Below are positions 16,001 to 57,259 of a DNA stretch of 64,000 nucleotides, piece after piece. The notes below the pieces were generated by a model. It worked only from the letters and a program-made list of their open reading frames with translations. It made no database searches and was not told where the DNA came from. The position numbers and the translations under genes were made by a program. This stretch comes from Macrostomum lignano. Its lineage: Eukaryota. The stretch is from contig NIVC01000104.1 in NCBI GenBank assembly GCA_002269645.1, forward strand, positions 897,179 to 961,178. The letters are read 5' to 3'. The number at the start of each line of letters is the position of its first letter. Position 1 is the stretch's first letter.

Positions 16001-19000
16001 GAAGGGGCGGCTGTCTATGGGGGAAGGGGTGGCTGTCTATGGTGAAAGGGGTGGCTGCCTATGGGGGAAGGGGTGGCTGTCTATGGGGGAAGGGGTGGCT
16101 GTCTATGGGGGAAGGGGTGGCTGTCTATGGTGAAAGGGGTGGCTGTCTATGGGGAAAGGGGTGGCTGTCTATGGGGGAAGGGGTGGCTGTCTATGGGGAA
16201 AGGGGTGGCTGTCTATGGGGGAGGGGGTGGCTGTCTATGGGGAAAGGGGTGGCTGTCTATAGGGAAAGGGGTGGCTGTCTATGGGGGAAGGGGTGGCTGT
16301 CTATGGGGGAAGGGGTGTCTGTCTATGGGGAAAGGGGTGGCTGTCTATGGGGGAAGGGGTGGCTGTCTATGGGGGAAGGGGTGGCTGTCTATGGGGAAAG
16401 GGGTGGCTGTCTATGGGGAAAGGGGTGGCTGTCTATAGTGAAAGGGGTGGCTGACTATGAGTGAGGGGGTGGCTGTCTATGAGTGAGGGGGTGGCTGTCT
16501 ATGAGTGAGGGGGTGGCTGTCTATGAGTGAGGGGGTGGCTGTCTATGAGTGAGGGGGTGGCTGTCTATGAGTGAGGGGGTGGCTGTCTATGAGTGAGGGG
16601 GTGGCTGTCTATGAGTGAGGGGGTGGCTGTCTATGAGTGAGGGGGTGGCTGTCTATGAGTGAGGGGGTGGCTGTCTATGAGTAGGGGGTGGCTGGCTGCA
16701 CACATGGGTAGAAGAAGGCTGCACATACTGGAGAAGGTGTCTAATTCATGAGGGTTGCCATCTGAGAAGGGGGTGGCTGTGCTCGGATGATTTGCAGCCC
16801 AGGCGTACCGCTTTCTTCGCCCTTCAGGAAGCAAGCCAAAAGTCCGGGCCAACTCTTCGCGCACCCAAGATGGTGCTGGACCAGCTGAACAAGCTGTTGA
16901 AATCGCAGCGCGATCGTCAGCAACAATTGGAGCAGGATTTGGCTGGACTGCGAGCCGAGGCTGGCAAGCACAATTCCACTGTGAAACAGTTGAGGGAAAC
17001 CGCCTGGCAAAAGGATAAGAGTTTACAGGTGTGGATTCTGTTATTTGTGTGTGTTGCATCAACGATGTCTATCCTAGAGGTGTCTGTAAAAATATCTAGA
17101 GGCGTTATCAAGGATATCTAAAGGTGACGTTAAATGTGTCTACAGTTGACATCAAAGATATCTAGAAGTATTTTCAGGGATATCTAGGGGTATCATCAAT
17201 GATATCTAGAGACGTCATCAAGGATATCTAGAGGTGTCGTCAGTGATATCTAGAGGTTTTATCAGAGATGTCTAGAGGTGCCATCAAAGATGTCTAGAGG
17301 TATCATAAATGATATCTAGAGGCGTCATCAAATATATCTAGAGGTTTTATCAGAGATGTCTAGAGGTGTCATAAGAGATGTCTAGAGGTGTCATCAAAGA
17401 TGTCTAGAGGTGCCATCAAAGATGTCTAGAGGTGTCATCAATGATATCTAGAGGTGTCATCAATGATATCTAGAGGCGTCATCAAAAATATATCTAGAGG
17501 TTTTATCAGAGATGTCTAGAGGTGCCATCAAAGATGTCTAAAGTATCATCAATGATTTCTAGAGGTGTCGTCAGTGATATCTAGAGGTTTTATCAGAGAT
17601 GTCTAGAGGTGTCATCAATGATATCTAGAGGTGTCATCAAATATATCTAGAGGTTTTATCAAATATGTCTAGAGGTGACATAAAAGATGTCTAGAGGTGA
17701 CATAAAGAATATCTAGGAAGTTTAGCAAGTATGTCTAGAGGGTTTATCAACGGTCTAGCCAGTTCAATTGGTAATCTACATCGGTATACCAAAAATGTCA
17801 AAAACAGAAATCCCCATTCGGTAATCCCAGGCCGCTCGCGAATCCGACACCGCTAACGCAGCCGAGGCGAAGCGGCTACGCGACAAGCTGTCCGAGGTGG
17901 AGCGCCGTCAGGCCAGCATCCGCGGCCTGTACACCGACGCCAAGCGTCAGCTAGAGACCGAGAAGGAGCAGCGACAAGCTCTGCAACAGGATCTGGATCG
18001 GATTGTTCGACTGCGTAGGAATGAAGAATCTGACAGGCTGACATTTCTCAAAGCGCTCTATTTGCAATTGGGCGGCAAGCTAGACGAATGCTCGAAGCGA
18101 TTGACCGCTGGACAGGTGCAGCACTGGCTGACCGAGGCGGTGGCCGCTCTGCTCAAGGAGGCCGAGGGTTGGCGGGGACTGCTTGGTAAATAGCGGTGTT
18201 GATTGTAATTGGATCGTTTTGTTTTATTTTAACAATAAAAGTACAGAATGATTAAGATAGTAAGGCAGTGGGAAAGTTAAGGAAATTAATAAGAAAATAG
18301 GCCAATAGATGGGCAGAGGTAGATAAAAGAGAGATGTATGGAGAGAGAGATATGGGTAGGTAGGGAGAAAGATAGAGAGATGGAGATAGGTGGAGAGGGA
18401 GTGAAATAGGGAGATGGTAGGTGGAGAGGGAGTGAGATAGGGAGATGGTAGCTGGAGAGGGAGTGAGATAGGGAGATGGTAGCTGGAGAGGGAGTGAGAT
18501 AGGGAGATGATAGGTGGAGAGGGAGTGAGATAGGGAGACGGTAGGTGGAGAGGGAGTGAGATAGGCAGATGGTAGGTGCAGAGGGAGTGAGATAGGCAGA
18601 TGGTAGGTGGAGAGGGAGTGAGATAGGGAGATTGTAGGTGGAGAGGGAGTGAGATAAGGAGATTGTAGGTTAGAGAGGGAGGGAGATAGGGAGATTGTAG
18701 GTTAGAGAGGGAGGGAGATAGGGAGATTGTAGGTTAGAGAGGGAGGGAGATAGGGAGACGGTAGGTGGAGAGGGAGTGAGATAGAAAAATTGTAGGTTAG
18801 AGAGGGAGGGAGATAGGGAGATTGTAGGTTGAGAGGGAGTGAGATAGGGAGACGGTAGGTGGAGAGGGAGGGCGATAGGGAGATTGTAGGTTAAAGAGGG
18901 AGAGAGATTGTAGGTGGAGAGGGAGTGAGATAGGGAGACGGTAGGTGGAGAGGGAGGGAGATAGGGAGATGGTAGGTGGAGAGGGAGTGAGATAGGGAGA

Positions 19001-22000
19001 CGGTAGGTGGAGAGGGCGGGAGATAGGGAGATTGTAGGTGGAGAGGGAGTGAGATAGGGAGACGGTAGGTGCAGAGGGAGTGAGATAGAGAAATTGTAGG
19101 TTAGAGAGGGAGGGAGATAGGGAGATTGTAGGTTAGAGAGGGAGGGAGATAGGGAGATTGTAGGTGGAGAGGGAGTGAGATAGGGAGACGGTAGGTGGAG
19201 AGGGAGGGAGATAGGGAGATGGTAGGTGGAGAGGGAGTGAGATAGGGAGACGGTAGGTGGAGAGGGCGGGAGATAGGGAGATTGTAGGTGGAGAGGGCGT
19301 CAGGTAGGGGCGAGATTAAGAGAGATTTTTACCGACTACTGCTGGTAAAGAGGCAGCAGTTAGTAGTCTCAGAAGGTCACATCCAGCTGTTGTCAGCAGA
19401 TCGCCTCATTAATTATTCAGCCGACTCTCGAACGGAGCTCAGCCGGCGCGATCGAGCTCTAGCCGACGTTGACAATGCTGTCGCCGAGGAGAAGTCCCGC
19501 CGGGCCGCCGCAGCCGAGGAGCTTCGCCGTCAGAAACGGGAGCTGGCCGAGCACTACGAGGCGATGCTGCAGCAACAGCGAGACCAGATGCAGAAGCAGC
19601 AACAGCTGCAGCAGCATGAGCTACAGAATTCCGACGGATCTAGAGCTGCTGAAGCATCGACATCATCAGTGTCGGCGACGTCCCCGGCGGAGCTGTTGAC
19701 GGGTCTACATGTAGCATTGGCCGTGTCAGCTCTGGTGCCGCTCAGCCGGCGTTGGCGCTCTCTGCAGCGACAGAAACGCTGCCTGATGAGCCTGCTGGCG
19801 GTTAGCGAGGCTCGAGCGGCCAAGCTGCGAATGCTGGCCGACACTCTGGATGGTCAGGACAGTCAAACTGGTCAGCAGCAGCTTCATCAGCGATGGCGCC
19901 GGCTGTACAGATTCCGTTCGGCTGTACTCGCCGTCATCGCTGCCAGACGTCTGCGTCGATTGATCAGCGTCTGTCATCAGAGTCGCGACAGTCGGATCTC
20001 GTCGACGCTTTGGCTGGGCGAATCGGCGCTAACAACGACGTCGTCGGATTTCGACGCCGAACAACAGTCGAACAACGCTCGGCTGACTGCGTGGCTGTCC
20101 AGCGATCGGCTGGCCTCGGCTGCCAGGGCTGCTCACGCCGAACTGAGTAGGAAAAGTCAGCATAGATTGGATTTGCGGGTCGCTGCCAGACAAGCTGCCG
20201 GTCATCTTATTGACGAATTAGACGCCATGTTTCCTCCGGCGTCCGCTGCCGTTCTGCTGTCCGACGGTGAGCCGTCGAGATTCCTTGGCACTGGCGTAGG
20301 CGGGGGCGGCATCGCTGAGCGGCTGCACCGCGGCGCCTTGGCGCTCTGTCGTCGCCTGTCGATGGCTGAGTCGGAGAGGGACCGGGCGGTGGCGGAGCTG
20401 GCGCAGGCTGAGGCCGAAGCGGTGAGCCCGCTGTGGGTTGTGCGATCTGATCATGTCACTCTGGAACCGGCTCTGTTGCGCTGCTTCCTGTTGTCCGTTT
20501 CTACCCTGGCGTCACTCTACCATCCGTCATTCTTGTCACTCTGTACTCTTCATCACTCTCTTTTCTTGTCACTCTCTACCCCACACGCACTCTTCTTGTC
20601 ACTCTCTTCACCTTCCGTAACTTTTATCCCGTCACTCTTAATCTCGTCACTCTATCTACCGTCAATATTTTTTGTCACTCTCTATCCTTCGTTACTTTTC
20701 TTGTCACTCTTTACCCCCGTTACTCTTGTCACTCTTTACCCCCGTTACTCTTGTCACTCTACCTACCGTCACTCTTTCTTGTCCCTCTATGTTAGTCACC
20801 CTATACCCTTCGTCACTTTTATCACGTCACTCCTATTTCTTGTCACTCTCTAATCTCGTCATTTTTATCATTCTACATACTGTCAACTCTTTCTTGTCAC
20901 TCTGTATGCTCGTCATTCTTGTCACTATTCACCGTCAGTCAATTTTTATCCTGTCACTCTATGAATTCCGATCCTCTTCCGATGTCACCCTGCAGGAGCG
21001 CCTTCGCCGCGAGACCGCTCCCCTGGAGGAGCACCGCGCCCTGGCCGCCCAGCTTGCTTCGTCGCGCGATCGCGAACGTTGCCAAGGCCGCCAATTAGCC
21101 GCCCTGACCGCCCGGGTCCAGTCGCTGGCTGGCGAGGACGCCGATCGAGACCGGACACTGGCCGAAGCGCTCTCGGCTGTCCGGGAGTCGCGCGATCGAG
21201 TTGAAGCCACGGACGGCAGGTAATTCGTTAATAAATCGATAGTTGATATTTTAGATCCGTTAATTTATCGATAATTATTATGTTTGATGACGTGTGACAT
21301 CAGTCCGTTTATTTGTCGATAATTGACTTTATCGATCCGTTGATTCATGGAAGATTAGCATTATCGATTCATTAATTTATCGATAATTGACATTGTGGGA
21401 TCCGGTAATTAATCGATGATAGACATTATCGTTATCAATTCGTTAATTTATCGATAACTAATATAATCGACCCGTTAATTCATCGACGATTGACCTTATC
21501 GACCCGATAATTCATCAATAATTTATAGTATCGATCTATTTATTCATTTATCGATAATTTACATTATGAATCTTGTAATTAATAGACAATTTGCATTATT
21601 CATTAGTTGATTTATCGATAACTGATATTATCGACACGTATATTCTTTGATAATTTGAATTATTGATCCAGTAATTAATCGATAGTTGGCATTATCTATC
21701 CATTTATTCATCGACATTATCGAGTCGTTGACATTAACGACTCGTTAATTAATCAATAATTTACAGCATAAATCCAATTATATATCGATAATTGAGATTA
21801 TCTAACTGTTAATTCATCGATAATTTACATTATTGATCCGTTAATTCATTAATAAATTACAGTATCGATCCATTTATTTATCGATAATTGGCGTCGCAAT
21901 TTGTTGATTCATTGGTAATCGATATTATCGATCCGTTAACGCAGAGAGCGCATGCTGACCGAACGGGCCGCCGCCCTGGAGTCCGCACTGGCAGCCTCCG

Positions 22001-22413
22001 GCCAGCGCCTTGCCGAGGCCAATCGCGATCAAGAAGCCGTCGCTGCCTACGCCGACGCCATCTGCCGGCTGGCCGATCGTCTCGTTGCCGACGGCGCCAT
22101 TGACACCGGCGTCGGCGGCTCCGGCGACGGTGGACCGCAGGCGGCCTCCGATCTGCTGCAGAGTCGACAGCTGCTGCCCCCGGCCTCGGCTGGCGGTGGC
22201 ACTGTTCTGGCTCGCTGCCAACGAGCCGTGGCCGGCGTCTGCGCCCTGCTAGCCGGGGCGGAGCGTCGAACAGCCGAAGCGCAGGAATCGCTGCTGGCTC
22301 ATAGGAAAATGCTTGTACAGCTGCGCAGAACTGCGGCCTCTGCGACCACGGCGACGGCTTCGGGGACAGCCAAATCTGGAAGTGCCGCTTCGCGGCGGAA
22401 GCATCGCGTCTGA
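10099..22413 (+). CDS. CCDC171: CCDC171-like long coiled-coil protein (about 1191 aa, 10 exons)
   Basis: Exons 10099-10603, 11570-11682, 11776-11864, 13162-13576, 15297-15470, 16798-17028, 17831-18185, 19421-20421, 20996-21219 and 21945-22413. All introns are GT-AG with matching phases; total 3576 nt in one frame. Heptad-rich throughout. The motif RFRSAVLAVIAARRLRRL resembles the conserved CCDC171 motif (recalled, not searched). The gene model is more certain than the name. Confidence 0.75.
10640..11460. repeat. 29-bp minisatellite, CCDC171-like intron 1
   Basis: Unit GTGAAGTGTGGGTTGCAGTACATCCGGTT, with recurring longer variant blocks. Confidence 0.95.
11990..13125. repeat. 32-bp minisatellite, intron 3
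   Basis: Unit AATGTGAACCCTGTGAAATGTGAATCTCAGGC, period 32 (12129 to 12161). Confidence 0.95.
13640..15235. repeat. 21-bp minisatellite, intron 4
   Basis: Unit GGGATTAGACAGGTAGGGACT with an interspersed 24-bp variant GGGAGCAAACCGGAGGTAGGGACT. Confidence 0.96.
15625..16695. repeat. 22-bp G-rich minisatellite, intron 5
   Basis: Unit AGGGGTGGCTGTCTATGGGGGA, switching to GTGAGGGGGTGGCTGTCTATGA after about 16440. Confidence 0.96.
17065..17760. repeat. About 22-bp TCTAGA-core minisatellite, intron 6
   Basis: Unit approximately TCTAGAGGTGTCATCAATGATA. Confidence 0.93.
18360..19320. repeat. 31-bp purine-rich minisatellite, intron 7
   Basis: Unit GGTAGGTGGAGAGGGAGTGAGATAGGGAGAT, period 31 (18422 to 18453). 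Confidence 0.95.
20450..20965. repeat. Degenerate pyrimidine-rich repeat, intron 8
   Basis: Recurring CTTGTCACTCT core at irregular spacing. Confidence 0.8.
21225..21935. repeat. Degenerate ATCGAT-core repeat, intron 9
   Basis: Recurring TTATCGATCCGTTAATTTATCGATAATT-like units. Confidence 0.8.
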
Positions 22414-24617: not shown

Positions 24618-26520
24618 ATGGATGACGATTTGTTCCTATCTTCCTTTGATCTGCCGCCAATGTCCGACATAGACAAGCTGGACCTGTCCGGCCTGTCCGG
24701 CGGCTTCTCATCGTCATCGGTTAACGGCGAGTTGGAACAGCTGCAGCGACTGCTCGACCTGCCTATGGACGATCTGCACGAGTTGAACAAATTTGCCGCC
24801 TCGGTTGACGCTTTCGGCGCTAACAACGGCATCGACATTCACGCCGGGGCTGGCGACGGCGGGGACGGCGACCCTGTGTTGCTGTCTGGCTACTCCACAG
24901 CGCCTGCGCCGCCACCACCGCCGACGCCCCGCCGCCGCCGACGCCCCCACCGCCGCCGATGCCGCAAAAGGCGTCAAGTTTAGTTCAATTGCAACTGCAC
25001 CGTTTTGCCCCTCCTCCGCCTCCGCCGCCGCCACCGCTGCAGCAGCCGCCGGTTTCGCGTCCGCCAACAACAAAAGGTCACCAAGTGATTTGGTTCGATC
25101 AGCCGGATGTCTGTCACGATGAACCGCAACCGGCGCTGCCACCTGCCGAGAGAATGCCCAGAAGTTTGCCAGAGACCGGATCGACTCCGACTATCATTAT
25201 TGGACAGGCGTCGCAGCAACCGGCGGCTCCAGCACCGCCGCCGCCTCCGCCGACACCTCCGCCGCCGCCACCTCCCCCTCAGCCGGAGTCGCCGTCGCCG
25301 CCCCAGCCCCAGCAAGTATTCGCCTGTTCCACGTGTTTTCGTTCGTATCAATCAAGGTCGGCGCTTCGGGAACACCGAGAGGCTGCTCACATGTGAGCCT
25401 TTTGTGTGATTATATATTTGCAGTAACAGAGTTGAAGCTCGATTACTTCAGGGTAGCTGAAGCTGAAGTTCTATCGCTTCAGAGAAGCTGAAGTTCTATC
25501 GCTTCAGAGAAGCTGAAGTTCTATCGCTTCAGAGAAGCTGAAGTTCTATCGCTTCAGAGAAGCTGAAGTTCTATCGCTTCAGAGAAGCTGAAGTTCTATC
25601 GCTTCAGAGAAACTGAAGTTCTATCGCTTCAGAGAAGCTGAAGTTCTATCGCTTCAGAGAAGCTGAAGTTCTATCGCTTCAGAGAAGCTGAAGTTCTATC
25701 GCTTCAGAGAAGCTGAAGGTCTATCGCTTCAGTGAAGCTGAAGTTCTATCGCTTCAGTGAAGCTGATGTTCTATTGCTTCAGAGAAGCTGAAGGTCTATC
25801 GCTTCAGTGAAGCTGAAGGTCTATCGCTTCAGTGAAGCTGAAGGTCTATCGCTTCAGTGAAGCTGAAGGTCTATCGCTTCAGTGAAGCTGAAGTTCTATA
25901 GCTTCAGTGAAGCTGAAGGTCTATCGCTTCAGGAAAGTTGAAGGTCTATCGCTTCAGATAAATCAGAAAATCTAATTTCTATGACTAGCTGTGGCACTTA
26001 TCTTTACTATAATCATCTAAAAAACTCCAGAAACAGCCCGGTAATCTGCCTGATCTGCGCTCGCCAGCTGCGCTCCCGACACGCTCTGGTGCGCCATCTG
26101 GAGACTCAGCACTGCCGGATGACCTCGCGCGGCCTCTGCCTGCCGTTCGCCTGCGACCTGTGCGGCCGGGATTTTCCCAGCGCCGATGCGTTGCTGAGGC
26201 ATCGCCGACGAGCTCCGGTGTGCTCGGTGGCTGCCACCTGTCCGGTCTGTTTGCACAAGTTTCTGAACTCGGGCGCTCTGGCGAGGCACAGAGCTGATTG
26301 TCAGAAAAAGCTGGATAAAGTGAGCACACCAACTGCTCCCCTGCCGGCTAAATTGAAGTGCCAGGTGTGCAAACTGTTGCTGCCCAATCCCGATGCTTAC
26401 CGCTTCCATATGCACTATAATAAATGCCGGGACTCGGCTAGCGCGTTGGCCACCGCAGGCGCTGTGAAACGGGATCGGCCGGCGGATTTGGCTTTCATGA
26501 GGAAGCTGAATCGGTTATGA
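24618..26520 (+). CDS. Proline-rich protein with five C2H2/C2HC zinc fingers (2 coding exons; one -1 frameshift near 24930)
   Basis: Exon 24618-25392 (donor GTGAGC) splices in phase 2 to 26031-26520. Fingers: CSTC..HREAAH, CLIC..HLETQH, CDLC..HRRRAPVC, CPVC..HRADC, CQVC..HMHYNKC. Adding one C to the CCCC run at 24927-24930 fuses the ORFs at 24618 and 24959. Confidence 0.78.
25455..25955. repeat. 25-bp minisatellite in the zinc-finger gene intron
   Basis: Unit GCTTCAGAGAAGCTGAAGTTCTATC, period 25 (25501, 25526, 25551); internal CTGAAG..CTTCAG hairpin. Confidence 0.96.
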
Positions 26521-33401: not shown

Positions 33402-34385
33402 ATGTCTTCGTCAACGTCGTCAAGTAGCAGCGTCGGTAGCGGCGTCTCCAGCCCGGTAGGCAAGCTGCTCCTAGCTGGTACGTGCGCCTGCGTCGCCGAC
33501 GCCCTGACTTTTCCCATGGACACCGTGAAGGTGCGTATGCAGATGGCACCAGCCGGCAGCGGCTTCCTCGCCACCCTGCGTCACGTGGCCGTCAGCGAGG
33601 GCCCGGCCGGCCTGTACGGCGGCTTGGGCGCCGGACTGCAACGTCAGTTCGCCTTCGCCTCGATTCGAATCGGATTCTACGAGCCGGTAAAGCAAGCCTA
33701 CATGGGACAGCTGGGGATGCGGCATCAGGACGCCTCCACCACGGCCCTGATGGGCGTCCGACTTCTGGCCGGCCTCACCACGGGCGCCTTGGCCGTCTGC
33801 TGCGCCCAGCCAACCGACGTCGTCAAGGTGCGCATGCAAGGCTCGGCCGGCCGCTACCCCGGCTGCGCCGCCGCCTATTCAACAATCTGGCGATCTGAGG
33901 GCCTCGCGGGCCTGTGGAAAGGCACCGGGCCCAGCGTCGCTCGCAACGCCATCGTCAACTGCGCTGAGGTCGTGTCCTACGACACCATCAAGACCTACAT
34001 GGTGGCCCGCCTGGGCATGCCGAACGCTGTCGGCACGCACTTCCTGGCCGGCCTGTGCAGCGGCTTCATCGCCACCCTGGTCGCCTCCCCGGTGGACGTG
34101 GTGAAGACCCGCCTGATGAGCGCCAGGCCGGAGGAGCGCGCCGGAGTCGTCAGCGTCACGCGCGGCCTCTACCAGCAGAGCGGCCTGCGCGGCTTCTACA
34201 AAGGCTTCGGGCCGAGCTTCGCCCGCATCGCCGGCTGGAACATCCTCATGTTCGTGCTGTACGAGAAGGCCAAATCCGCGCTAGAAGTCGCCCCGGCGCT
34301 GCCGTCGCCTCATCTGGTGGCGGTGGCGGCTGTCGCGGCCTCCACGGGTGCCCCGTCTGTGCAGCCCAAGAAGCTGCAGCTTTGA
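33402..34385 (+). CDS. UCP2: Mitochondrial uncoupling protein UCP2/3-like (SLC25 carrier), intronless CDS, 327 aa
   Basis: Three carrier signatures: PMDTVKVR, PTDVVKVR, PVDVVKTR. UCP-type segments LQRQFAFASIRIGFYEPVK, VARNAIVNCAEVVSYD and SFARIAGWN retain the three nucleotide-binding arginines. High GC3. Confidence 0.93.
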   Translation: MSSSTSSSSSVGSGVSSPVGKLLLAGTCACVADALTFPMDTVKVRMQMAPAGSGFLATLRHVAVSEGPAGLYGGLGAGLQRQFAFASIRIGFYEPVKQAYMGQLGMRHQDASTTALMGVRLLAGLTTGALAVCCAQPTDVVKVRMQGSAGRYPGCAAAYSTIWRSEGLAGLWKGTGPSVARNAIVNCAEVVSYDTIKTYMVARLGMPNAVGTHFLAGLCSGFIATLVASPVDVVKTRLMSARPEERAGVVSVTRGLYQQSGLRGFYKGFGPSFARIAGWNILMFVLYEKAKSALEVAPALPSPHLVAVAAVAASTGAPSVQPKKLQL

Positions 34386-44495: not shown

Positions 44496-47400
44496 TGAAG
44501 CGGCTTGCGAGCGGTAGCTAGTTGAAAAGTAGCAAGCAAGCAAAAACAGTTTTCCGAGTACATCTGTTAGGGGCATATGAGCGTAGTTCTTTGTATTCTT
44601 TATACGTAGTTCTTGGTCGCAAAACCGGCGTCGGGACTGGGTCTTCCGCGTCGATGACGACTGGCTTCAGCCTCTCGACTGACACCTGGTCGCTGCGAGT
44701 GCCCAGGTCCAGCAGGAAAGCTTCATGGCGTCCCGCTCGAGGACCTTGAACCGGCCGTCGTAAGGTCGCTGCAGTGGAGGGCGGTGGCCGTCGCGCCGGA
44801 TTAAGACGAACTGGCAGGCGTCGAGGGCAGCGGGCCAGGCTGTGGGGCGGCTGCCGTGACGGGACGTCAGCGTCGGCTGGAATGCCTGGACGGCACCGCG
44901 GAGCCGGGCGGGGAACTGGTCGTGGTCGCCGGGCGGCGGGCTGGGCTGCAGGCACTCGCCGGGCACGCAGAGGGGCGCACCGTAGACCAGCTCGGCCGAC
45001 GAGGCCGGCAGGTCCTCCTTAGGGGCTGCCCGGATGCCGAGCAGCACCCAGGGCAGCTCGCTGACCCAGGCTGGTCCGGTCAGCCGCGCCATGAGGCACG
45101 GCTGCCGGTGGAAACGCTCGACCAGCCCATTCGCCTGCGGATGGAAAGCCATGGTCCGGTGCAGCTGCATGCCGAACAACCGGGAGACGTTGGACCACAG
45201 CTGCGACGTGAACTGCGAGCCGCGGTCCGAGGTGATATCGCTCGGCACGCCGAGCGTGGCGATCCAATGGGCGATGAAGGCGGAGGCGCATGCGGCCGCG
45301 GAGGTGTCGGTCATCGGTATCGCCTCGGGCCACCTGGTGAAACGGTCCTTGATGGTCAGCAGATGCGTGAACCTTGCGAAGGCAGCAGCGGCCCCACCAG
45401 GTTGACGTGCACCTGGGCGAAGCGCTGGTCCGGGACGCGGATATTGTCAACCGGGGCGGAGACGTGCCGCTGCACCGTGGCCGTCTGACAAGCGACGCAG
45501 GACCGGGCCCACTGGCTGACGTCCTTGTTCATGCCGGCCCCCCCCCCCACGAACTTGGCGGCCACGAGGCGCCGCGTGCTGCGGATGGACGGGTGGGCGA
45601 GGCCGTATGTGGCGTCGAAGACGTTGCGGCGGAAATCCGGTGGCACTAACGGGCGCGACCGGCCCGTGGAGATGTCGCAGAGCAGGTCGACACCGGGGCT
45701 GAACTGCAGCGGGCTCTAGTTGTATGCTGGCGTCGGCCTGACTGGCCGTATCGGCCGCCTGCGCCTGCGCCATTGCCGCAAAATCCACTGCAGCAAAGAA
45801 ACCGTGCAGCGAAACAGCGCGTCTGCGACCGAGTTGTCCTTGCCCGCCACGCGCTGGATGTCCGTGGTGAACTTGGACACGTAGGCCAGGTGGCGCTGCT
45901 GCCGGGCGGACGTCGGACATCTTGGACATGGCGGTGACCAGTGGCTTGTAGTCCGTGAAAGCAGCGAATGTGCGGCCCTCGAGGAAATAGCGAACCGCCG
46001 CCAGGTACAAGGCGAGCAGCTCGTGGTCGAACGCGCTGTACTTCTGCTCGGGCCGGAGGAGCTGCCGGCTGAAGAAGGCAAACGGCTGTCAGGCGCCGCC
46101 AACCCGCTGCTCGAGCGCCGCACGGACTGCGGTATCGGAGGCATCGTATGGCCGCGGGTGCGCCAGCATGGCGGCAGAGGCCAGCGCCCGCTTCGCTCCG
46201 TCGAAAGTGGCGGTCAGCTCAGGCGTCCACCGGACGAACTTCTTGCCGGCCATGGCCGCATGGATGGGGCGCAGCAGCTGGGCGGCGCGCGGAACGAAGC
46301 GGTGGTAGAAATTCACCATGCCGGCGAACTCCTGCAGGCCCTTTAGCGTGCCGCTGGCGACTTTAGCGGGCAGCGGCACGGCCCCTTGGGCGCTGATCCG
46401 GTGGCCGAGGAAGTCGATCTCGCTGCGGCCGAACCCGCACTTTGCCGGATTGACGATAAGGCCGTTGTCGGCCAGGCGCTGGAACAGCGTCCACAGGTGC
46501 TCCAGGTGCTGCTGCGGGCTGCGGCTGGCGACCAGGAAGTCGTCGATGTAGTCGAAAACGAAGTCCAGGTCTTGGCAGACGGAGTACACCAGCCGCTGGA
46601 AGGCCTGGGCGGCGTTCTTGAGGCCGAACAGCATTCGCAGGAACTCGAGAAGAGGCCAAACGGGGTGGTGACTGCGGTCTTGGCACGTCAACTGTGGCCA
46701 CGGGCACCTGGTGGTAGCCGCGGACCAGGTCGATCTTGGAGAAGATCGAGCAGCCGGCCAGGCGCGCTGAGAAGTCCTGGATGTGCGGCACCGGGTAGTG
46801 GTCGGGCACCATGGCATCGTTGAGCCGCCTGAAGTCGCCGCAGGGCCGCCAGAGGCCTTTGGCACCATATGCAACGGCGAGGACCACGGGCTGTTGGACC
46901 GGCGCACGATGCCGAGCTGCTCCAGGAGCCGGAACTCCTCCTTGGCCACCGCCAGCTTGTCCGGCGGGCCCTGCGTCGGGATTTGGTGCTCCAACACGTG
47001 TCGTGGCGCAGCCCGCTGGAAACTGGGCTCGGTGAGGGCGGGGAACTCGGCCAGCAGCTGGTTGTATGGGTCCGCAGCGGCGGCTGCGGCGAGCTGCAGT
47101 CCGGGCCCCGCGCCGTCCAGCAGGTGCACGCTGGCGAGCGAGCGGGCGTCCAGGTGGCGTCGGTGCGACAGGTCCACCAGCAGGCGGTGGTGCCGCAGGA
47201 AGTCGGTCAGCCGGCCGGCTGTCCCAGAGCTTGTCCGCCTGCTGCGCTGCTGCCCGGGGGTCCGCGAAACTGACGGTTGTCATGGCCATGCGTACCTCCG
47301 GTGGCAGCTGTTGGCGGAACAGTTCCTCGAACAGCAGGCAGGGGCGGTGGTTCCCCAGCAGGGCGAGCATCTCGTCTATCAACTCGGACGGCCGCCGGTC

Positions 47401-47844
47401 GCCAAGGCCGGACATGCTGAGCAGGCGGCTGGCCCGCTGCTGAGGAGTCAAATCGAACGTGCTATTGAGGCGCTCCTTTAGCTGAGCTTCTTTACTTGTT
47501 CGCCTCTGGAGGAGCCTCGAGCACATCGAGGAGGCGCTCTGCTGTCTGCTGGTCAAGAGCTGCGACCAGATGGGCGTACTTGGTCTTGTCCTGAGTGATG
47601 CCTCTCTGGGTAAACTGAGCCTCGGCTTGGATAAAGCAGGCTCGAGGCTGGGCCGCCCAAAACGTGGGCAACTACGGGGACACAGCAGAGTCGATTTGTG
47701 GGGCCATTGCACGAAATGGCTGCGTCGGACTCACCAATGAAGCGGCTTGCGAGTGGTAGCTAGTTGAAAAGTAGCAAGCGAGCAAAAACAGTTTTCCGAG
47801 TATATTTGTTAGGGGCATACGAGCGTAGTTCTTTATACGCGACA
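44496..47844 (-). mobile_element. Decayed Ty3/Gypsy LTR retrotransposon, CsRn1/Kabuki-like
   Basis: Minus-strand order: gag relic (..QAQFTQRGITQDKTKYAHLV.., LGDRRPSELIDEM), RT (YPVPHIQDF, FSKIDLVRGYHQ, RMLFGLKNAAQAFQR, YIDD), RNase H (DASD, YSAFDHELLA), integrase (HPSIRST..CVACQ, ITSDRGSQFTS, HPQANGLVERFHR, PYDG). 5' LTR 47844-47738 is TG..CA; 3' LTR at 44496-44605 is damaged. Many frameshifts; no protease recognised; no matching TSD. Confidence 0.93.
47720..47736 (-). other. Primer-binding site, tRNA-Trp-like
   Basis: TGGTGAGTCCGACGCAG immediately inside the 5' LTR, close to the TGGTGACCCCGACG Trp-type PBS used by CsRn1-clade elements. Confidence 0.65.
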
Positions 47845-49072: not shown

Positions 49073-50138
49073 AGACTCAGGGTAAGACTGCGATGTGCCG
49101 ATTAGACCAGCTGTATTGTGGTAGTGTGGTACAATTCCTCGAGATTTCGCTCTCTCCAGCCAGTCTCAAAATTCTGCCACCCTCCCCAGATCTGACAAAT
49201 ATGAAACTCTGATATTGATGAAGGTCAAAAATAATCAGTTAAGTCGAGAAATGGATGACGTGGAAACAAATTCAGAACTATCAAGAAGTTTGTTTGCAGC
49301 TCCATCAGCGAATTTCAAGCCGCATCGGACAGTGCTGATCCCGACCAAGTGGCCGAAGGAACCGTGAACAGAGCTAAATTTACACACACATTGACCTGTT
49401 TTAGGAGTTGCATGCGTTTATCTTTGGTGTGCAGGACCTGGGGCATCCCGGGAGAGGTCAGTGCCAATGCCAAATCAGACCCAAGTTTGTCTCCAATGAG
49501 TCAGTCCCAGGGCCTTCTGAAAGGCGTTCGGCATCGACCACCAATAGACTGCACTCTGTACTTCTCAAGGCAATTGTCAAGCAGTAAAACAGTATCTGAA
49601 CTGTTGCACTGAACTGTCATTTAAACTGCCAAGAATGCCTGTTTAGCCATCTCTGTCCATTCCAGTGAGCGCAATCGCTAGTGTTTGGGAGTGGAGTTCA
49701 AAAATATCCCTGAGCCGGAATAAAATTCCTTTTTGACTGCTCATTTGACATCATTTATGCCACACCCCGTTAGTCACAATTACCTGAGAGACTGTCATTA
49801 AGCTAGCGAAGTGTCAATCAAAGTCATAAAAAGGTCATAAGAGTCAAATAGACTATTCAGCTGCATACACTTGCACTGACAAAACTCTGCTAAACACACT
49901 TTTGATTGCTGAGCTGTCATGAAGCAAACAATGCTGCCTAATCTTCACAGACAAGCAAGCCATGCAGTCTCTGCTCCGCCCTGCTCACATGAAGGCTTTC
50001 AGCTCAACCAACGTCGCCGCTCCGACCGGAAACACGTGCCAATCCGATGTGCATAAATTCGCATCTGCCGACTGCTCAAGATAACAAGCTCAGACTCGAC
50101 TCAGCTCAAACACTCGAATCGATCCTACTCAAGCAATC

Positions 50139-50327
50139 ATGAAGTGGCAACTCGCTCTCGGACTTTTGCTGTGCGCAGCCCTGGCTGTCGCTGTGCCCAC
50201 CCAGGAGGAGAAGGCTGAGGCCATGGCCGTTCTGGAGGCTCTGTCCAACGTGGACGAGTCCAGCATGTCGGAGGAGGCCGTCGACCACGCCAAGAAGTTC
50301 GTCAGGGTCAGGGTTAGGCTTGGTTAA
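50139..50327 (+). CDS. 62-aa secreted prepropeptide (signal, acidic pro-piece, KK, FVRVRVRL-G), copy 1
   Basis: ATG in CAATCATGA context, hydrophobic signal MKWQLALGLLLCAALAVA, nine acidic residues in the pro-region, a dibasic site and a terminal Gly. High-GC3 codons; CATAAA about 75 bp upstream; duplicated at 53445. Confidence 0.8.
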   Translation: MKWQLALGLLLCAALAVAVPTQEEKAEAMAVLEALSNVDESSMSEEAVDHAKKFVRVRVRLG

Positions 50328-50974
50328 ATGCTACCATAGCCACACCTGACATCCAGCTCACTTTACCGAAGCTTGAGACTCGCTGGCACTGACGACAACT
50401 CACAAATGACCTTTGAACTTTGAATCCCGACCGCAAAATCACGGTTGTATTGACTGATCCGTTTTACAAAATATACCATCGAGAACACAGATTAAGATCT
50501 CAGCAGCACCTTAAGCTTTGTCTTATTGAACATTTTCAATTTCGCCCAGTCGCCAGTCCAGTCTTTGCGTAGTGAACTGGTACTTGAAATTATTTGAAGA
50601 TAATCATTGATTGTAACTTAATAGTTACTACTGGAAGGTTTTGATTTGCTAAATCTCCTTATTAACGGCTACAAAGCATTGGGGAAAAAGTGTAAGGCAG
50701 GAAAAATGCGTCGCGGGCAAGTCTCGTGCTCCCGAGCGCAAAATGGTGGCATTGCGCAAGGCAGTGGTCGACACCGTCAAGCAGTATTGCGCTAAGACAC
50801 AGGAAGCTCTGACTAACTCCCTGGAGAACCTACGAGTAGTTGACGCATTTCACGCTGAGGTATGGTGCCATACCTGCAAGAACAGGCACGATTCTACGGT
50901 TCGTCGACAGCCCGGGCTCTGAGCTTCATTATCTGTATTTTGTGCGGCCGAGAGATTCCCAGAGAGATTACTGC

Positions 50975-52012
50975 TGGAGTGTTTCTGCCGATGTAGTCGA
51001 CTGCGCAGCATGTAACATGTCCCTCGGCCCATTTACTGCAGGAGTGTTTCTGCCGATGTAGTCGACTGCGCAGCATGTAACATGCCCCTCGGCCCATTTA
51101 CTGCAGGAGGGTTTCTGCCGATGTAGTCGACTGCGCAGCATGTAACATGTCCCTCGGCCCATTTACTGCCGGAGTGTTTCTGCCGATGTAGTCGACTGCG
51201 CAGCATGTAACATGTCCCTCGGCCCATTTACTGCCGGAGTGTTTCTGCCGATGTAGTCGACTGCGCAGCATGTAACATGCCCCTCGGCCCATTTACTGCC
51301 GGAGTGTTTCTGCCGATGTAGTCGACTGCGCAGCATGTAACATGTCCCTCGGCCCATTTACTGCCGGAGGGTTTCTGCGGATGTAGTCGACTGCGCAGCA
51401 TGTAACATGTCCCTCGGCCCATTTACTGCAGGAGTGTTTCTGCCGATGTAGTCGACTGCGCAGCATGTAACATGCCCATCGGCCCATTTACTGCCGGAGT
51501 GTTTCTGCCGATGTAGTCGACTACGCAGCATGTAACATGCCCATCGGCCCATTTACTGCCGGAGTGTTTCTGCCGATGTAGTCGACTGCGCAGCATGTAA
51601 CATGTCCCTCGGCCCATTTACTGCCGGAGGGTTTCTGCCGATGTAGTCGACTACGCAGCATGTAACATGCCCATCGGCCCATTTACTGCCGGAGTGTTTC
51701 TGCGGATGTAGTCGACTGCGCAGCATGTAACATGTCCCTCGGCCCATTTACTGCCGGAGTGTTTCTGCCGATGTAGTCGACTGCGCAGCATGTAACATGC
51801 CCATCGGCCCATTTACTGCCGGAGTGTTTCTGCCGATGTAGTCGACTACGCAGCATGTAACATGCCCCTCGGCCCATTTACTGCCGGAGGGTTTCTGCCG
51901 ATGTAGTCGACTACGCAGCATGCAACATGTCCCTCGGCCCATTTACTGCCGGAGGGTTTCTGCCGATGTAGTCGACTGCGCAGCATGTAACATGTCCCTC
52001 GGCCCATTTACT
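50975..52012. repeat. 65-bp tandem array, about 16 copies
   Basis: Unit CTGCCGATGTAGTCGACTGCGCAGCATGTAACATGTCCCTCGGCCCATTTACTGCCGGAGTGTTT, exact 65 periodicity (visible in the ORF track), a few variant sites. Confidence 0.97.
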
Positions 52013-53444
52013 TTAGGCGTCAACGAGTAAAGGTAGGTGCTTGTCCCTTGAAAGGTCCAGCGTAGTAGTCTGGGTGCACTAGGCACCACTTCCCGTGCTC
52101 TTGGCCGTCCCTGCCACAGTTCCATTGATTTCACTTCCCATGAGACTGGAATGCTTTGTGATCCTTGTGTCGCGCATCCAGCTTGCATTGTGGGGCTGTC
52201 TTATTGATTAACAAAGCGTCACTTCCTTTTATTTCTCCTTCGCCGCACGGGACAGCTTCACATGCACTGACCAGACTTCACCTTCTCCCAAGTGATGTCC
52301 TTCAATTTTTCCTTCAGGAGCTTTCTGACAATCTACTTGATGGCCAAGCCAAATACAAACTGGTGGCGGAGCCTATCGTTCAGGCCTGTCAATTCGAAGC
52401 TCTCGACCGCCTGATGAAGCCTTCTGGAGTAAGCAGCAGGTGTGTCTTCGCTATCCTCTTGCTTCAGATAGTGAAAGACGTACCGATAGACCAGTCCTGA
52501 CCTTTATCGCCTTTGATTCTTTAGAAGTTCGTTCATCTCGTCGAAAGTTTTGTCTTGTGGTTTGTGAGGGAGTAAGGCCAGCAGGTTAAAAGCTTTTTTA
52601 CCGAGCTGATCGATGAATGCGTGTCTTCAGGACGTCCTCCTCATACTTATTAACTTCAGCAATTGTCTCCAATGGTTGAAGGCATCGGCTCACTTCAGCC
52701 GAGACGTCTATCTCCAGGGTTTGATCGCAATCGTCGGCGGTGTTGTTTTCCGTTGGAACGGAAGGCGACAAGCAGCTTCATTGGCGATGTAGCAAGCAGC
52801 TACAAATTAAATCCTCCTGTTGAGCAGCTCATCACTGTTACGCTTGTTCTATTTTGAGCCCTGTGGCTCACACGTTTTTGGCAATCGAAGACTAACTAGG
52901 TCGGGAGAATAACTTAAACAGCTTTCCTGTAAGCACACAATCTATATATTCGTATGAGGCGGCTAACAGGGATTATATTGGCTAGATCTGATATCGAAGT
53001 CGCTTAATCAAAGACTGAGGCTGACTGAACTTGACAGCTCGCAGCTGACCGAACTGTGGCTTTTCGTGCAATTCTCGCCAATGGCCCAAAACGATGAGAA
53101 CTTCAGAGTCGATAAAGTGTCAATCAAAGTCATAAAAAGGTCATAAGAGTCAAATAGACTATTCAGCTGCATACACTTGCACTGACAAAACTCTGCTAAA
53201 CACACTTTTTATTGCTGAGCTGTCATGAAGCAAACAATGCTGTCTAATCTTCACAGACAAGCAAGCCATGCAGTCTCTGCTCCGCCCTGCTCACATGAAG
53301 GCTTTCAACTCAACCAACGTCGCCGCTCCGACCGGAAACACGTGCCAATCCGATGTGCATAAATTCGCATCTGCCGACTGCTCAAGATAACAAGCTCAGA
53401 CTCGACTCAGCTCAAACACTCGAATCGATCCTACTCAAGCAATC

Positions 53445-53633
53445 ATGAAGTGGCAACTCGCTCTCGGACTTTTGCTGTGCGCAGCCCTGGCTGTCGCTGT
53501 GCCCACCCAGGAGGAGAAGGCTGAGGCCATGGCCGTTCTGGAGGCTCTGTCCAACGTGGACGAGTCCAGCATGTCGGAGGAGGCCGTCGACCACGCCAAG
53601 AAGTTCGTCAGGGTCAGGGTTAGGCTTGGTTAA
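53445..53633 (+). CDS. 62-aa secreted prepropeptide, copy 2
   Basis: CDS identical to 50139-50327 by eye; offset 3306 bp. Confidence 0.8.
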   Translation: MKWQLALGLLLCAALAVAVPTQEEKAEAMAVLEALSNVDESSMSEEAVDHAKKFVRVRVRLG

Positions 53634-53992
53634 ATGCTACCGCAGCCACACCTGACATCCAGCTCACTTGATCGGAGCTTGAGACTTGCTGGCACTGACG
53701 TATGCACTCTGAACTCTGACTCCTGACGGCATAATTATTGACTGATCAGTTTAACAAAATATGACAACATGAACTCTGTTTCTCAGCAGAACTATAAGCT
53801 TTGTCTGATTTATCAGTTTCACCAAGTCGCCAGCAGTAAAGTAAGCGTAAGTACCTAGGGCTTATCTGAGCAGATATTCATTGATTATAACTTATTTAAG
53901 CCTAAATTCTGATGCTGACTCGATAACATATATAGACGCTAGAGAGCCTCGAAGTTCTAAGGAAAACATCGACGGCTGAATTTTTGAAGTAT

Positions 53993-56900
53993 CCCTATGA
54001 AAAATTGGCCCGAATTTTCGCCCGAAAACATATGAAATTGGGCCCGGAACTTTAAATTTGCGGGTGAAAACTAAAAAGCGGTCGATTCACCCGGAAAGCA
54101 CGCCGACAAAACGGTTGAAACTAAATCGGGCGAAAAAGCGGGACTCTCGCCCGGAAAGCGGGGAAAGCAGAAACGGCCCAGACGTGCGGGTCTCTAGCCC
54201 GTTTTTTTCTAAAAGCGTGTCCTGAGGGACTTTGACGTGACGATGCAGATTAAAAATGGGTTTAAATCAATATAGCTAAACGAGTAGGAAGCTAGGTGCC
54301 CAGGTTCCAAGATTCAACCGTACATGTAGGTTTATTATTTTAAAAAGTACTATTATAGGAGTTTATATATCGATCACAAATGGTGGGAAATAATGTGTCG
54401 AAATCATTACTTCCATGCCCTTTTGGGGAATCTTTTTGCATGCTAATCTTTAATTTTTTACACGAGCTGCGTCTGGGGACTGCGTTTAAAATTTTGACGC
54501 GGCTGAGATGCGGCTGGCGACATGGAAGTGAAATCATTTACAATCGCTTACTATAAATACCTGTTTCTGAATAAGCTATTCACAGGCTAAAATCTATTTT
54601 TATTAAGTATTTGCTGTGCTTTTCACTCTTTCATTGCGCTGACCAATGTGAAAAAAAGCTAGGAAACTATTTTGTTTGTTTTTGTTACTCGAAAAATATT
54701 TAAATTTCAGACGCCACGTTTTCAGAACTTCGATATTTTATGTGCTAGCTAGTGAAGCGTGTTTTGTTACTTTTGTATTAATTTATCATAATCTAACAGA
54801 CAAAGTTTATTTAACTTCAAAAATAGTCAATGTGAATTATTTCACTAAATGAGTCAATAGCAAGGACTGACCCCCTGCCCCTGCCCTGGTTCAGGAATTG
54901 GCAGTCACATAGTTAATTATAATTTAATTAAGTCCAGTAATTAGCCTATTTATTTATTTCTTAAAGTTAGTAAAAATAGAAAATAATTTAGAAAACTTAT
55001 CCTGATTAATATTTCACCTATAATGAAGATAGTATTGTATATGAGCACAGAGAGCTTGCTGAATGGTAAAAAGTTTTAGAACATAAGTAACAAATCAATT
55101 TTAAAAACCATTTATAAAGTCCAAATATAGCTCGTAAAACTCTGAGTAGCATTAATATAATTTTTGCTTTTTCAAGTTTGTATAGTCTATATAGTACTTT
55201 TTAGAAAGCTATGTATTCACATTATTTTTTAATCTGTATGCTTTTTGTATTTTATTTAATATAATTTTGATAACTTATTATATTCTAAGGGAACCTAAAG
55301 CCTAGAACTGAGCATTTTTCAAGGAAGCTAATAACTTGAAAAAGTTTTGCAATTTAACATATTCCCAGAGATAAAGGCCCTTTATATCTTATAAATAAGC
55401 CTTCTTTTTGCTCTTATATGAATGTTTTAGATCTAATAATCTGAATATGTTTTGTAGAATAAACATTTACCATCAGATTTAACATTCCAAGCACTGTACT
55501 TATACCATTATAATTAAAGAAAAATTATTAATAATCAATTTTGTTGCCTTTTAATTTAGGTTTAGATTTTATTGCTCAATAAACAGAATTTTAGCATCAT
55601 CATACCATGCTCCTAAGTCATTTATGCTATGTATACATGCCCCTCAGCCAAGTTTTCCTCTGGCCATTAATGTCTGATGACATTGGACTGCTAAGCGTCG
55701 TCGCCGGGATTATGCCGTGCACTACAGGACTGGTGTTAGGCGACATACTCCAGCCCAAACAGTCTATTTTAAAGTCATGTAAAATCACAAAATCCGAGCT
55801 GCAGTGTGCCTACTCCCGATGCCGAGAGGGCCAACTACCGAGAAAGACCAGCGTCGCTAGAAAGGCGACGAAGACCAAACCAGGTGATGTTTTCATTTTT
55901 TTGTATTGTAGTGTTGTTTAAAACGTTATTGACGCTTTTCTGCAACTGCGCCCCCTTCTACTCCAGGTGCGCTGCTTCGATTAGCTGGTGCTGCAGCATC
56001 TCAGCTGCCAGAATCTGCTGTTACGCCACCCAGCACCAGGCTCACAACCAGTGACACTGCTAACATGTTCAATCAAGCGCAGTATCGCATCCTGTCGCTC
56101 GCTGAGTTATAAATCTATACCTAAACTTTGAACTTATGAATTTCTATCGCATTTGCTTTTGTTCTACACTGATTTGTTTTTTTCATTGCTTCGTAATGTG
56201 GCTGCGACTGGGAGGGAGGGATCTCGAAGTCACCTTAATTTGCACCAGACCCCATTACTGATCTCGGTTCTTCCTATCCTTCCGAATGTTGCTATTTCCC
56301 CCTCACATCGTTTCTCTCCTTTCTCCGTGGTCGCGCTAATACTTTCCCTATCTTAGCTATTTCACATGTGCATTCTGTGTGCACCCCTCTCCTTGCACTC
56401 TGTGCCTTAGATCTACCTCTTTTCAGTTGCAAACGTACTAGTATATTTGGTTATTTCTTAGCTGCAAATGCCCTATAAATAGTTAGTTATTTCTCCTTTT
56501 TATGGTTTTCTTCAGAATTTCTCTACGTCAAGCCCCTTCATGTTATCTTCTTTACAACTTTGTTTGTTTCTGTTTCGATTCTTTTCTTAACCCTCCTTTG
56601 CTTTTATTACTTTAATGCTTTAATGCTTTTGCTTACTGAACGTATTGAATGCATACATTAAATATTTAAATAAACTATCGCTCACACTTTTTCTTATTAT
56701 GTGGCCAAGCTTAAACATTTCTATCTAGATCTAGATTTCTTATTGAATCCCTCCAGAATTGCCTTATTTTTCTTCTCGATACATGTAGCTCTCTTGGAGG
56801 GGGTCATTTAGCTCGTACATGCAAAATCTTCCTATTCAACTAGATACAAGTTTTATTACAGTATGAAAAGTGGCAGTCACCGTAATTAAGTTTATGCCCT

Positions 56901-57208
56901 CTAAAAACTTACTATAATATCGTGCACTATCACTAAGACCAAAAGCAGGAAATATGACCAGCTCTTCGGGCCGGATTTGCAAGCAAAATATCGGTTAACT
57001 GGCCCGGATTTTTCGGCGCAAAATAATTCTGGGTGAATCGCCCGTAAATATTCGGGTATAAATGCGGTTGCATGCACGGGTGCATCGCCCGAAAAACGAA
57101 CTTTTCGTAACGATTCCGGGCCAGTAGCCCGGCAATTTTTACACCCGCAAAGTGCTGACGATTTCGGGTGAAGAGTAGGGTGAAAATTCGGGCCAATTTT
57201 TCATAGGG
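53993..57208. mobile_element. Non-autonomous CMC (EnSpm/CACTA-like) DNA transposon, 3.2 kb
   Basis: Perfect 27-bp TIRs CCCTATGAAAAATTGGCCCGAATTTTC (53993-54019 and 57182-57208) fit the CMCWR terminus. 2-bp TSD AT. Clustered subterminal GCCCG/CGGGC repeats at both ends. No transposase recognised. Confidence 0.8.
55670..56112 (+). CDS. Spliced ORF inside the CMC element, unknown product (about 119 aa from this ATG; may be a fragment)
   Basis: 55670-55883 joins 55967-56112 through an 83-bp phase-1 GT-AG intron without a stop (..KATKTKPG|ALLRLAGAAASQLPES..ILSLAEL*). Confidence 0.4.
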
Positions 57209-57259
57209 ATGTTTCGAAAAGGTAAGAAGTTATTAAGTGATTTATCACAGGTATAACGC

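Follow-up and report, generated by a model that had tools for sequence, protein, structure and literature searches.

The window analysed here is a 64,000-nucleotide (nt) stretch of DNA from the flatworm Macrostomum lignano, and it contains two copies of a small gene whose product ends in FVRVRVRL, followed by Gly and a stop codon. The first-pass annotation had read the open reading frame (ORF) at 50139-50327 (+), here copy 1, as a signal peptide of about 18 residues, an acidic piece with nine Asp/Glu residues, a Lys-Lys (KK) site and FVRVRVRLG-stop, and all of these elements are present in its translation. It had also described two identical gene copies. Copy 2 lies at 53445-53633 (+) and its coding sequence (CDS) has 0 differences from that of copy 1. 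The features of the two copies are listed below, including untranslated regions (UTRs); the signal peptide and cleavage sites were assigned by rule (-3/-1, dibasic) rather than by a predictor.

50022-50058 (+): copy 1, promoter-like block CCGACCGGAAACACGTGCCAATCCGATGTGCATAAAT with an E-box (CACGTG), CCAAT and a TATA-like CATAAAT; conserved among paralogues, putative promoter
50088-50138 (+): copy 1, putative 5′ UTR, from the starts of 5′-partial transcript-derived ORFs (P0002, P0016, P0019, P0020)
50139-50192 (+): copy 1, signal peptide, residues 1-18 (MKWQLALGLLLCAALAVA), predicted cut after A18 by the -3/-1 rule; near-invariant in the superfamily
50193-50291 (+): copy 1, acidic propiece, residues 19-51, assigned by composition; acidic though sequence-variable in paralogues
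50292-50297 (+): copy 1, Lys-Lys junction, putative processing site, conserved in the superfamily
50298-50321 (+): copy 1, predicted mature FVRVRVRL, encoded by TTC (GTC AGG)(GTC AGG)(GTT AGG) CTT; from translation, paralogue pattern and hydrophobic moment
50322-50327 (+): copy 1, Gly62 (putative amide donor) and TAA; GGT-TAA/TAG in 16/16 distinct CDS
50328-50475 (+): copy 1, putative 3′ UTR ending in the block TGATCCGTTTTACAAAATATA (50455-50475; AATATA poly(A)-signal variant), from paralogue conservation
53328-53364 (+): copy 2, promoter-like block, matching that of copy 1
53445-53633 (+): copy 2, CDS identical to copy 1 (signal 53445-53498, propiece 53499-53597, KK 53598-53603, FVRVRVRL 53604-53627, Gly 53628-53630, stop 53631-53633)
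53634-53763 (+): copy 2, putative 3′ UTR with the conserved block TGATCAGTTTAACAAAATA (53743-53761), from paralogue conservation

Two identical genes for a short, probably secreted precursor

The translation of copy 1 runs uninterrupted over 62 codons (MKWQLALGLLLCAALAVAVPTQEEKAEAMAVLEALSNVDESSMSEEAVDHAKKFVRVRVRLG-stop), starting with MKWQ and ending in AKKFVRVRVRLG before the stop. Residues 1-18 carry a Lys at position 2 in the n-region, an unbroken hydrophobic core of 13 residues (L5-V17) and Ala-Val-Ala at positions -3 to -1. A 33-residue spacer follows (residues 19-51), with nine Asp/Glu against one Lys, and the C-terminal part consists of KK (52-53), FVRVRVRL (54-61), Gly62 and TAA. The 30-nt tail encoding the last of these elements occurs twice in the window, the second time at 53604-53633, where shuffled sequences give an expectation of 0.

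Both CDS sit inside a duplicated block of 586 bp (49809-50394 and 53115-53700) with 98.5% identity. Each copy has about 330 bp of its own upstream sequence, promoter-like sequence included, and its own 3′ flank; past the block, a weaker similarity runs on as far as the conserved 3′ motif.

The block CCGACCGGAAACACGTGCCAATCCGATGTGCATAAAT lies around 80-115 nt 5′ of the ATG and is kept among paralogues at four other loci whose flanks have diverged. A comparable promoter-like block also precedes a related gene on a separate contig (L006, described below). The 5′-partial transcript-derived ORFs of copies on this contig begin 30-51 nt 5′ of the ATG, about 30-35 nt 3′ of the TATA-like box, a spacing that would fit TATA-directed initiation. 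The leader has no upstream ATG and has A at -3. On the downstream side, the sole block common to all paralogues is TGATC(A/C)GTTT(T/A)AC(A/C)AAATA, positioned 128-146 nt past the stop (50455-50473 and 53743-53761). With its ends predicted from these conserved blocks, the mRNA would be intronless and about 400 nt long.

The GenBank annotation of the Mlig_3_7 assembly was built only from a genome-guided RNA sequencing (RNA-seq) transcriptome (StringTie/TACO/TBONE) and TransDecoder ORFs. It labels family members "hypothetical protein" only, and its transcript-based models of family proteins all end at the same Gly-stop. This bears on a scenario that the first-pass annotation had named as fatal to its reading, in which transcripts splice at a GT in the tail to a different C-terminus: the transcript-based models end at the stop, and only chimeric ab initio models from the ML2 assembly splice there. 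We rejected both of these models, P0005 (A0A1I8G6Q8, 'SERPIN domain-containing') and P0028 (A0A1I8ID49, 'Neur_chan_LBD'). P0028 contains even an antisense translation of another family copy. Both fuse family members to unrelated exons, and their misleading names, which are annotation errors in the databases, conceal the family.

The C-terminal tail is coding and diversifying

A search for paralogues, which the first-pass annotation had proposed, returned about 20 ORFs of the same layout at other M. lignano loci, part of a large clustered superfamily. Five loci that we fetched hold 17 more copies and give 16 distinct CDS, the window included. All 16 are unbroken ORFs of 62-72 codons ending in GGT-TAA or GGT-TAG. 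Their tails include FVRLRVRIG, FVRVHVRFG, IFRVRVRIG, IFRVRVHIG, FIHIHFG and WLRVRARVRVGSRRRSRSG; Arg is encoded across the copies by AGG, AGA, CGT and CGC, and His is the only alternative at the basic positions. Two copies, with the tails FVRARVRVRLG and FVRVRARIRLG, also lie in another paralogous region (L001, NIVC01002033.1) that is more diverged.

The tail DNA itself repeats a hexamer (GTCAGG GTCAGG GTTAGG), and its three GT sites are potential splice donors; the window is extremely minisatellite-rich, and splicing in the ML2/MAKER models P0005 and P0028 starts from within the tail. These are the points in favour of reading the tail as run-on into repeat DNA, and the paralogues argue against it. 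With 9-10 of 30 nt changed relative to the window tail, four paralogue tails nevertheless keep the pattern of two hydrophobic residues, three basic/hydrophobic pairs, Gly and stop, whereas random substitution at equal density retains that pattern in only 0.05-0.13% of cases (simulation, 200,000 trials). Since CGT, CGC, CAT and CAC codons break the GT-AGG motif yet keep the amino-acid class, the tail must be under protein-level constraint. The position of the Gly-stop is constant in all copies and is where the transcript-based models terminate, and conservation 3′ of the stop is confined to one short block. On the paralogue evidence the tail codes for protein and does not stem from read-through into an intron or satellite, and the precursor layout put forward in the first-pass annotation extends, with protein-level constraint, across many paralogues.

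The three parts of the precursor evolve differently, the signal slowly and KK plus tail fast. The ratio of nonsynonymous to synonymous differences per site (pN/pS) is 0.32 for the signal (synonymous component, pS, 0.107), 0.88 for the propiece (pS 0.214) and 0.64 for KK plus tail (pS 0.387). Among the near-identical A-type copies, the tail differs by one Val/Ala-Arg unit insertion or deletion plus 1-2 substitutions, and the only replacement within codons 1-53 is H/N at residue 50.

Tail length shifts by whole GTC/GCT-AGG (Val/Ala-Arg) hexamers, giving 8- as opposed to 10-residue peptides (50298-50321 in the window; 3350-3379 and 6160-6189 in L001). This pattern suggests slippage of the coding GTC-AGG (Val-Arg) hexanucleotide as a diversifying mechanism.

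A clustered superfamily with conserved precursors and variable ends

A family-profile search against 1.84 billion representative proteins gave ten matches, nine from M. lignano and one on contig L006. A second profile search, in a database of 5.8 billion clusters, returned 29 clusters, again all from M. lignano except L006. Distant members retain the signal, which is near-invariant, the acidic propiece and the KK junction. In the superfamily alignment K53 is invariant and K52 is conserved in at least 90% of members, and the propiece is acidic in every member though variable in sequence.

By contrast with these conserved parts, the C-termini are mutually unrelated. Nearly all are cationic, and they include Trp/Arg-rich, Pro/Arg-rich, His-rich and two-Cys types. 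Examples are WRRRRRFRWRKAIRVAGKVAKAVL, the Pro/Arg-rich FLRVRLPRVRMPRVRLPRVRLPRLRVRFRWSKK, WRIKSACKIFRRLLHLARKCYAKKG with two Cys, WRIRFRRIRIRWRRVYRVVRTAYRIYRHLPFPGK and FRIRIRWGRVARNVLRLLGK, along with the short tails GFHVHFHG and FHLHLPGK. Three members on L003, L004 and other M. lignano contigs (P0032, P0045 and P0060) have His in place of Arg and specify FIHIHF-, GFHVHFH- and FHLHLP-amide donors. The Gly amide-donor end proposed in the first-pass annotation recurs throughout this hypervariable set: G, GK or GKR, the ends on which carboxypeptidase trimming and peptidylglycine amidation classically act, terminate 20 of the 23 distinct tail types. Grouped into about 11 sequence classes, around 8 have such an end against a background of about 8%, which is very unlikely by chance (a rough estimate that takes the classes as independent).

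The genes occur in arrays at about one per 3 kb; the 20-kb locus L003 holds five members and L004 six. On two contigs, series of 19 and 18 protein accessions numbered consecutively in GenBank include at least 10 and at least 8 members. The single match not assigned to M. lignano, L006 (Logan contig SRR31628392_42504; 929 nt), has a family member at 541-813 with a similar promoter block and the Pro/Arg-rich tail FLRVRLPRVRMPRVRLPRVRLPRLRVRFRWSKK. It probably derives from another Macrostomum species, which would make the family older than M. lignano. The range observed so far is almost exclusively M. lignano, and L006 is the one sequence that points to a wider breadth.

The first-pass annotation had not recognised a described family, and Pfam, PDB, profile and full-text searches agree. 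A Pfam search with four members gave a borderline match to PF22991 on P0001 only (27.1 against a cutoff of 27), the others scoring 12-17 bits; we rejected the P0001 match as a chance hit due to a duplicated acidic segment. A PDB profile search gave no match. Full-text literature searches with 12 family Mlig gene identifiers found no paper that names any of them in its main text; for motifs, FVRVRV had no match, RVRVRL occurred in one unrelated paper, and VRVRVR returned mostly designed-peptide papers. By these searches, the family is undescribed and belongs to no known family.

Taken together, the evidence leaves us highly confident that this is a real gene for a secreted precursor in which the C-terminal peptide is the selected part. 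The first-pass reading is thus supported in part, for precursor architecture and selection; the antimicrobial or fibril-forming activity that it proposed is conjectural.

Predicted product and maturation

The hydrophobic moment of FVRVRVRL, in which hydrophobic residues and Arg strictly alternate, peaks at 180 degrees, with 1.34 compared with 0.49 at the helical angle of 100 degrees, as expected for the amphipathic beta-strand that the first-pass annotation had read from the Val/Arg alternation. With three Arg and a free N-terminus, the peptide is computed to be cationic and amphipathic. The predicted masses are 1042.69 Da for FVRVRVRL-NH2 and 1298.88 Da for KKFVRVRVRL-NH2, should KK be retained.

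In the maturation scheme that we propose, each copy would be a small intronless TATA-driven gene for a 62-residue prepropeptide. Its signal peptide (1-18) would direct the precursor into the secretory pathway and be removed co-translationally near A18, and the acidic propiece (19-51; net charge about -8) would mask the basic C-terminus during transit. A convertase-type cut at Lys-Lys followed by carboxypeptidase trimming would yield FVRVRVRL-Gly, and peptidylglycine amidating enzymes would convert this to FVRVRVRL-NH2 with a net charge of about +4, which could adopt an amphipathic beta-strand on anionic surfaces. Read from the sequence, the precursor has the marks of this class: a signal peptide, KK directly before the product and a C-terminal Gly donor. 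We regard cleavage at KK and amidation as moderately probable. In flatworms, amidated peptides are made via a PC2-dependent route.

In combination, a conserved prepro-region, cationic ends that are hypervariable, an arrangement in tandem arrays and variants rich in Trp/Arg, Pro/Arg or His form the signature of host-defence or offensive membrane-active families. The features that characterise antimicrobial peptide (AMP) classes are found here: the predicted peptide is cationic and amphipathic, and it is encoded by a multigene family with conserved prepro and diversifying mature regions. A host-defence or membrane-active role has at best an even chance. As the best explanation of the whole we favour, at even odds, a membrane-active peptide that is secreted, cut at KK and amidated at its C-terminus, and that belongs to a host-defence or offensive arsenal.

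Several observations weigh against this explanation. KK is a weaker convertase site than KR, and 3 of the 23 tail types have no amidation-type end. No Arg or Lys follows KK in some of the His paralogues (FIHIHF, GFHVHFH), nor within the predicted product of FHLHLP; a positive charge on these peptides would require acidic pH, and they might alternatively bind metal. The predicted product resembles flatworm FVR(L/I)-amide neuropeptides. The transcript support holds at the level of the family, as the two window copies are not told apart from near-identical paralogues. Finally, a review of designed alternating peptides found the RV and KV versions to be much less active than those with I, L or W.

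Comparison with known systems

Frog dermaseptin and temporin precursors consist of a conserved signal, an acidic spacer, a dibasic site and, at the C-terminus, one cationic peptide that is hypervariable and has a G or GK donor. They are encoded by multigene families in which the prepro-region evolves slowly and the mature region fast, and their products can be as short as 8-13 residues. The Macrostomum genes have the same functional architecture, which is analogous rather than homologous, as profile searches returned Macrostomum-type sequences only. They differ from the frog genes in having KK rather than KR at the junction, in being intronless, in their flatworm host and in a predicted product that is a linear alternating beta-strand, not an amphipathic helix. 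Cathelicidins and the arminins of Hydra similarly join a conserved N-terminal pro-region (anionic in arminins) to a variable cationic C-terminal effector, and arminins are lineage-restricted. Unlike these, the Macrostomum family has no cathelin domain or sequence similarity to them, and both its precursors and its products are much shorter.

The closest parallels for the product come from synthetic design. The 8-mers [IR]4 and IRIKIRIK (IK8L) are antibacterial and bind membranes as amphipathic beta-strands. FVRVRVRL has in common with such [XZ]n peptides, and with the MAX1-type VK/VR hairpin gels, a strict hydrophobic/cationic alternation, with a length of 8 residues and amidation (here predicted). 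The [XZ]n peptides are synthetic, whereas FVRVRVRL is a natural sequence with FV at the N-terminus and Leu at the end. A specialist review calls linear beta-stranded AMPs uncommon in nature.

A helminth-wide study (Irvine et al. 2023, PMC10414684) calls the flatworm AMP repertoire undescribed. The accessible part of its supplementary file 5 lists BOX15_Mlig024774g1/g2 as AMP-like, with a predictor score of 100, among more than 16,000 computational candidates. This entry is a distant member of the superfamily (MKWQLALGLLLCTALAAAAP…AEKW RRRRR FRWRKAIRIAGKVAKAVL). The peptide predicted there is a different one of 18 residues; the study does not describe the family, its arrays or its ultrashort RV/His members, and the accessible part of the supplementary list contains none of the short RV/His tails. 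The large clustered superfamily, this published distant paralogue and the likeness to (A/G)FVR(L/I)-amide are all points absent from the first-pass annotation. We found no peptidome paper for M. lignano in the literature, and family gene identifiers gave no match in the accessible parts of supplements to M. lignano papers on neoblasts and germline, ageing, gut, seminal fluid, positional RNA-seq and ploidy.

Alternative interpretations

The alternative that survives best, itself unlikely, is a signalling peptide: a neuropeptide or hormone, or an allohormone passed to mates or prey. F(VR)3L-amide would then be an expanded relative or mimic of the flatworm npp-1 peptides, (A/G)FVR(L/I)-amide, that addresses a receptor via the C-terminal VR(L/I/F)-amide. 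Peptides confirmed by mass spectrometry in planarians or predicted in schistosomes are ASFVRL-amide, GFVRL-amide, GFVRI-amide and AVRLMRL-amide. The family shares with npp-1/FVRI-amide peptides an N-terminal FVR, a C-terminal VR(L/I)-amide donor and the same phylum; its short members end in VRL-, VRI- or VRF-amide donors, and FVRLG with two extra GTCAGG units gives the exact window tail. The layout of signal, basic site and Gly is also the one by which prohormones have been recognised in planarians. Set against this, npp-1/FVRI-amide precursors contain several copies of 5-6 residues between basic sites (for example P0064) and are conserved across phyla, in flatworms and lophotrochozoans, whereas the Macrostomum precursor has one C-terminal peptide without repeated copies, bears no similarity to a multi-copy FVRI-amide precursor, and belongs to a lineage-restricted family for which the profile search matched Macrostomum-type sequences only. 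The mature region is hypervariable, including Arg/Trp-rich and Pro/Arg-rich peptides of 20-34 residues that are unlike neuropeptides, and the genes are present in dozens of tandem copies. A search for the M. lignano npp-1/FVRI-amide precursor itself, using a synthetic repeat query, returned no M. lignano match.

Slightly behind it, and equally hard to favour, comes a small secreted protein that is not cleaved at KK. By pairing charges or by self-assembly into beta-sheets, either a 44-residue acidic-plus-basic polypeptide or KKFVRVRVRL-NH2 would contribute to the structure or assembly of mucus, rhabdites, adhesive or egg-shell material. The weakness of KK as a convertase site and the acidity of the propiece throughout the family fit such a protein, His-alternating paralogues would be pH- or metal-switchable, and designed hydrogel peptides of alternating Val/Arg self-assemble. 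The propiece, however, is near-neutral (pN/pS 0.88), as would suit a disposable spacer better than a functional partner; KK is conserved, as described above, while nearby basic residues vary freely; and the G/GK/GKR ends indicate trimming and amidation of a released peptide.

More doubtful again is a secreted arsenal that mimics neuropeptides or self-assembles. In the first version, F(VR)nL/I-amides might have arisen from an FVR(L/I)-amide-type C-terminus by Val-Arg repeat expansion and be released externally (mucus, gut or ejaculate), with the nerves or muscle of prey, predators or mates as their targets. In the second, the peptides might form antimicrobial beta-sheet fibrils in mucus, with pH-switchable His variants, as a natural counterpart of designed VR/VK hydrogel peptides. 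Lastly, we regard as highly improbable, given the paralogue evidence for a coding tail, that the tail is read-through from a splice donor into a (GTYAGG)n intronic or satellite repeat, with the true product in a downstream exon, or that the ORF is non-coding.

Implications

Host-defence peptide families are essentially undescribed in flatworms. If its peptides prove active, the family of secreted, amidated, membrane-active peptides that we favour would be the first arsenal of gene-encoded, clustered and diversifying cationic peptides to be described as a family from a free-living flatworm. It would represent a clean convergence on the frog-skin design of a conserved prepro-region and a hypervariable amidated peptide. 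It would also supply natural linear alternating beta-strand peptides of 6-10 residues, a class known mainly from synthetic design, as cheap starting points for structure-activity work. The change in tail length by whole Val/Ala-Arg units is consistent with coding hexanucleotide slippage as a route of diversification. As M. lignano is a transgenic model tractable to RNA interference, function is directly accessible.

Genomic context of the locus

The window is eukaryotic in character: it has 36 minisatellite arrays, and repeat-filled introns interrupt its genes. It is colinear with L002 (NIVC01000104.1, Mlig_3_7) at 94-98% identity, mostly around 97-98%, and differs from it in repeat copy numbers and in one 3.2-kb insertion. 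By this comparison, the window represents the same locus in a different haplotype, subgenome copy or assembly.

A 65-bp minisatellite at 50968-52012 (16 copies, 96% matches) takes up much of the region that separates the gene copies. The distance between the copies is 3306 bp, compared with 2862 bp on the Mlig_3_7 contig, largely because the copy number of this minisatellite differs.

About 350 bp 3′ of copy 2, a segment of about 3.24 kb (53981-57220) has 43-nt terminal inverted repeats (53981-54023 and 57178-57220; 91% complementary) and no long ORF. Missing at the colinear site of L002, it resembles a non-autonomous DNA transposon whose insertion is polymorphic.

Four other features lie upstream of copy 1:

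4996-22413 (+): protein-kinase gene with minisatellite-filled introns; Pkinase exon at 6130-6525
24618-26520 (+): C2H2 zinc-finger gene
33402-34385 (+): mitochondrial-carrier gene of 327 amino acids, apparently one exon
44496-47837 (-): degraded retroelement with an RVT_1 reverse-transcriptase ORF (46092-47177) and an integrase-like ORF without a Pfam match, flanked by 100-nt direct repeats (44496-44595 and 47738-47837; 94%)

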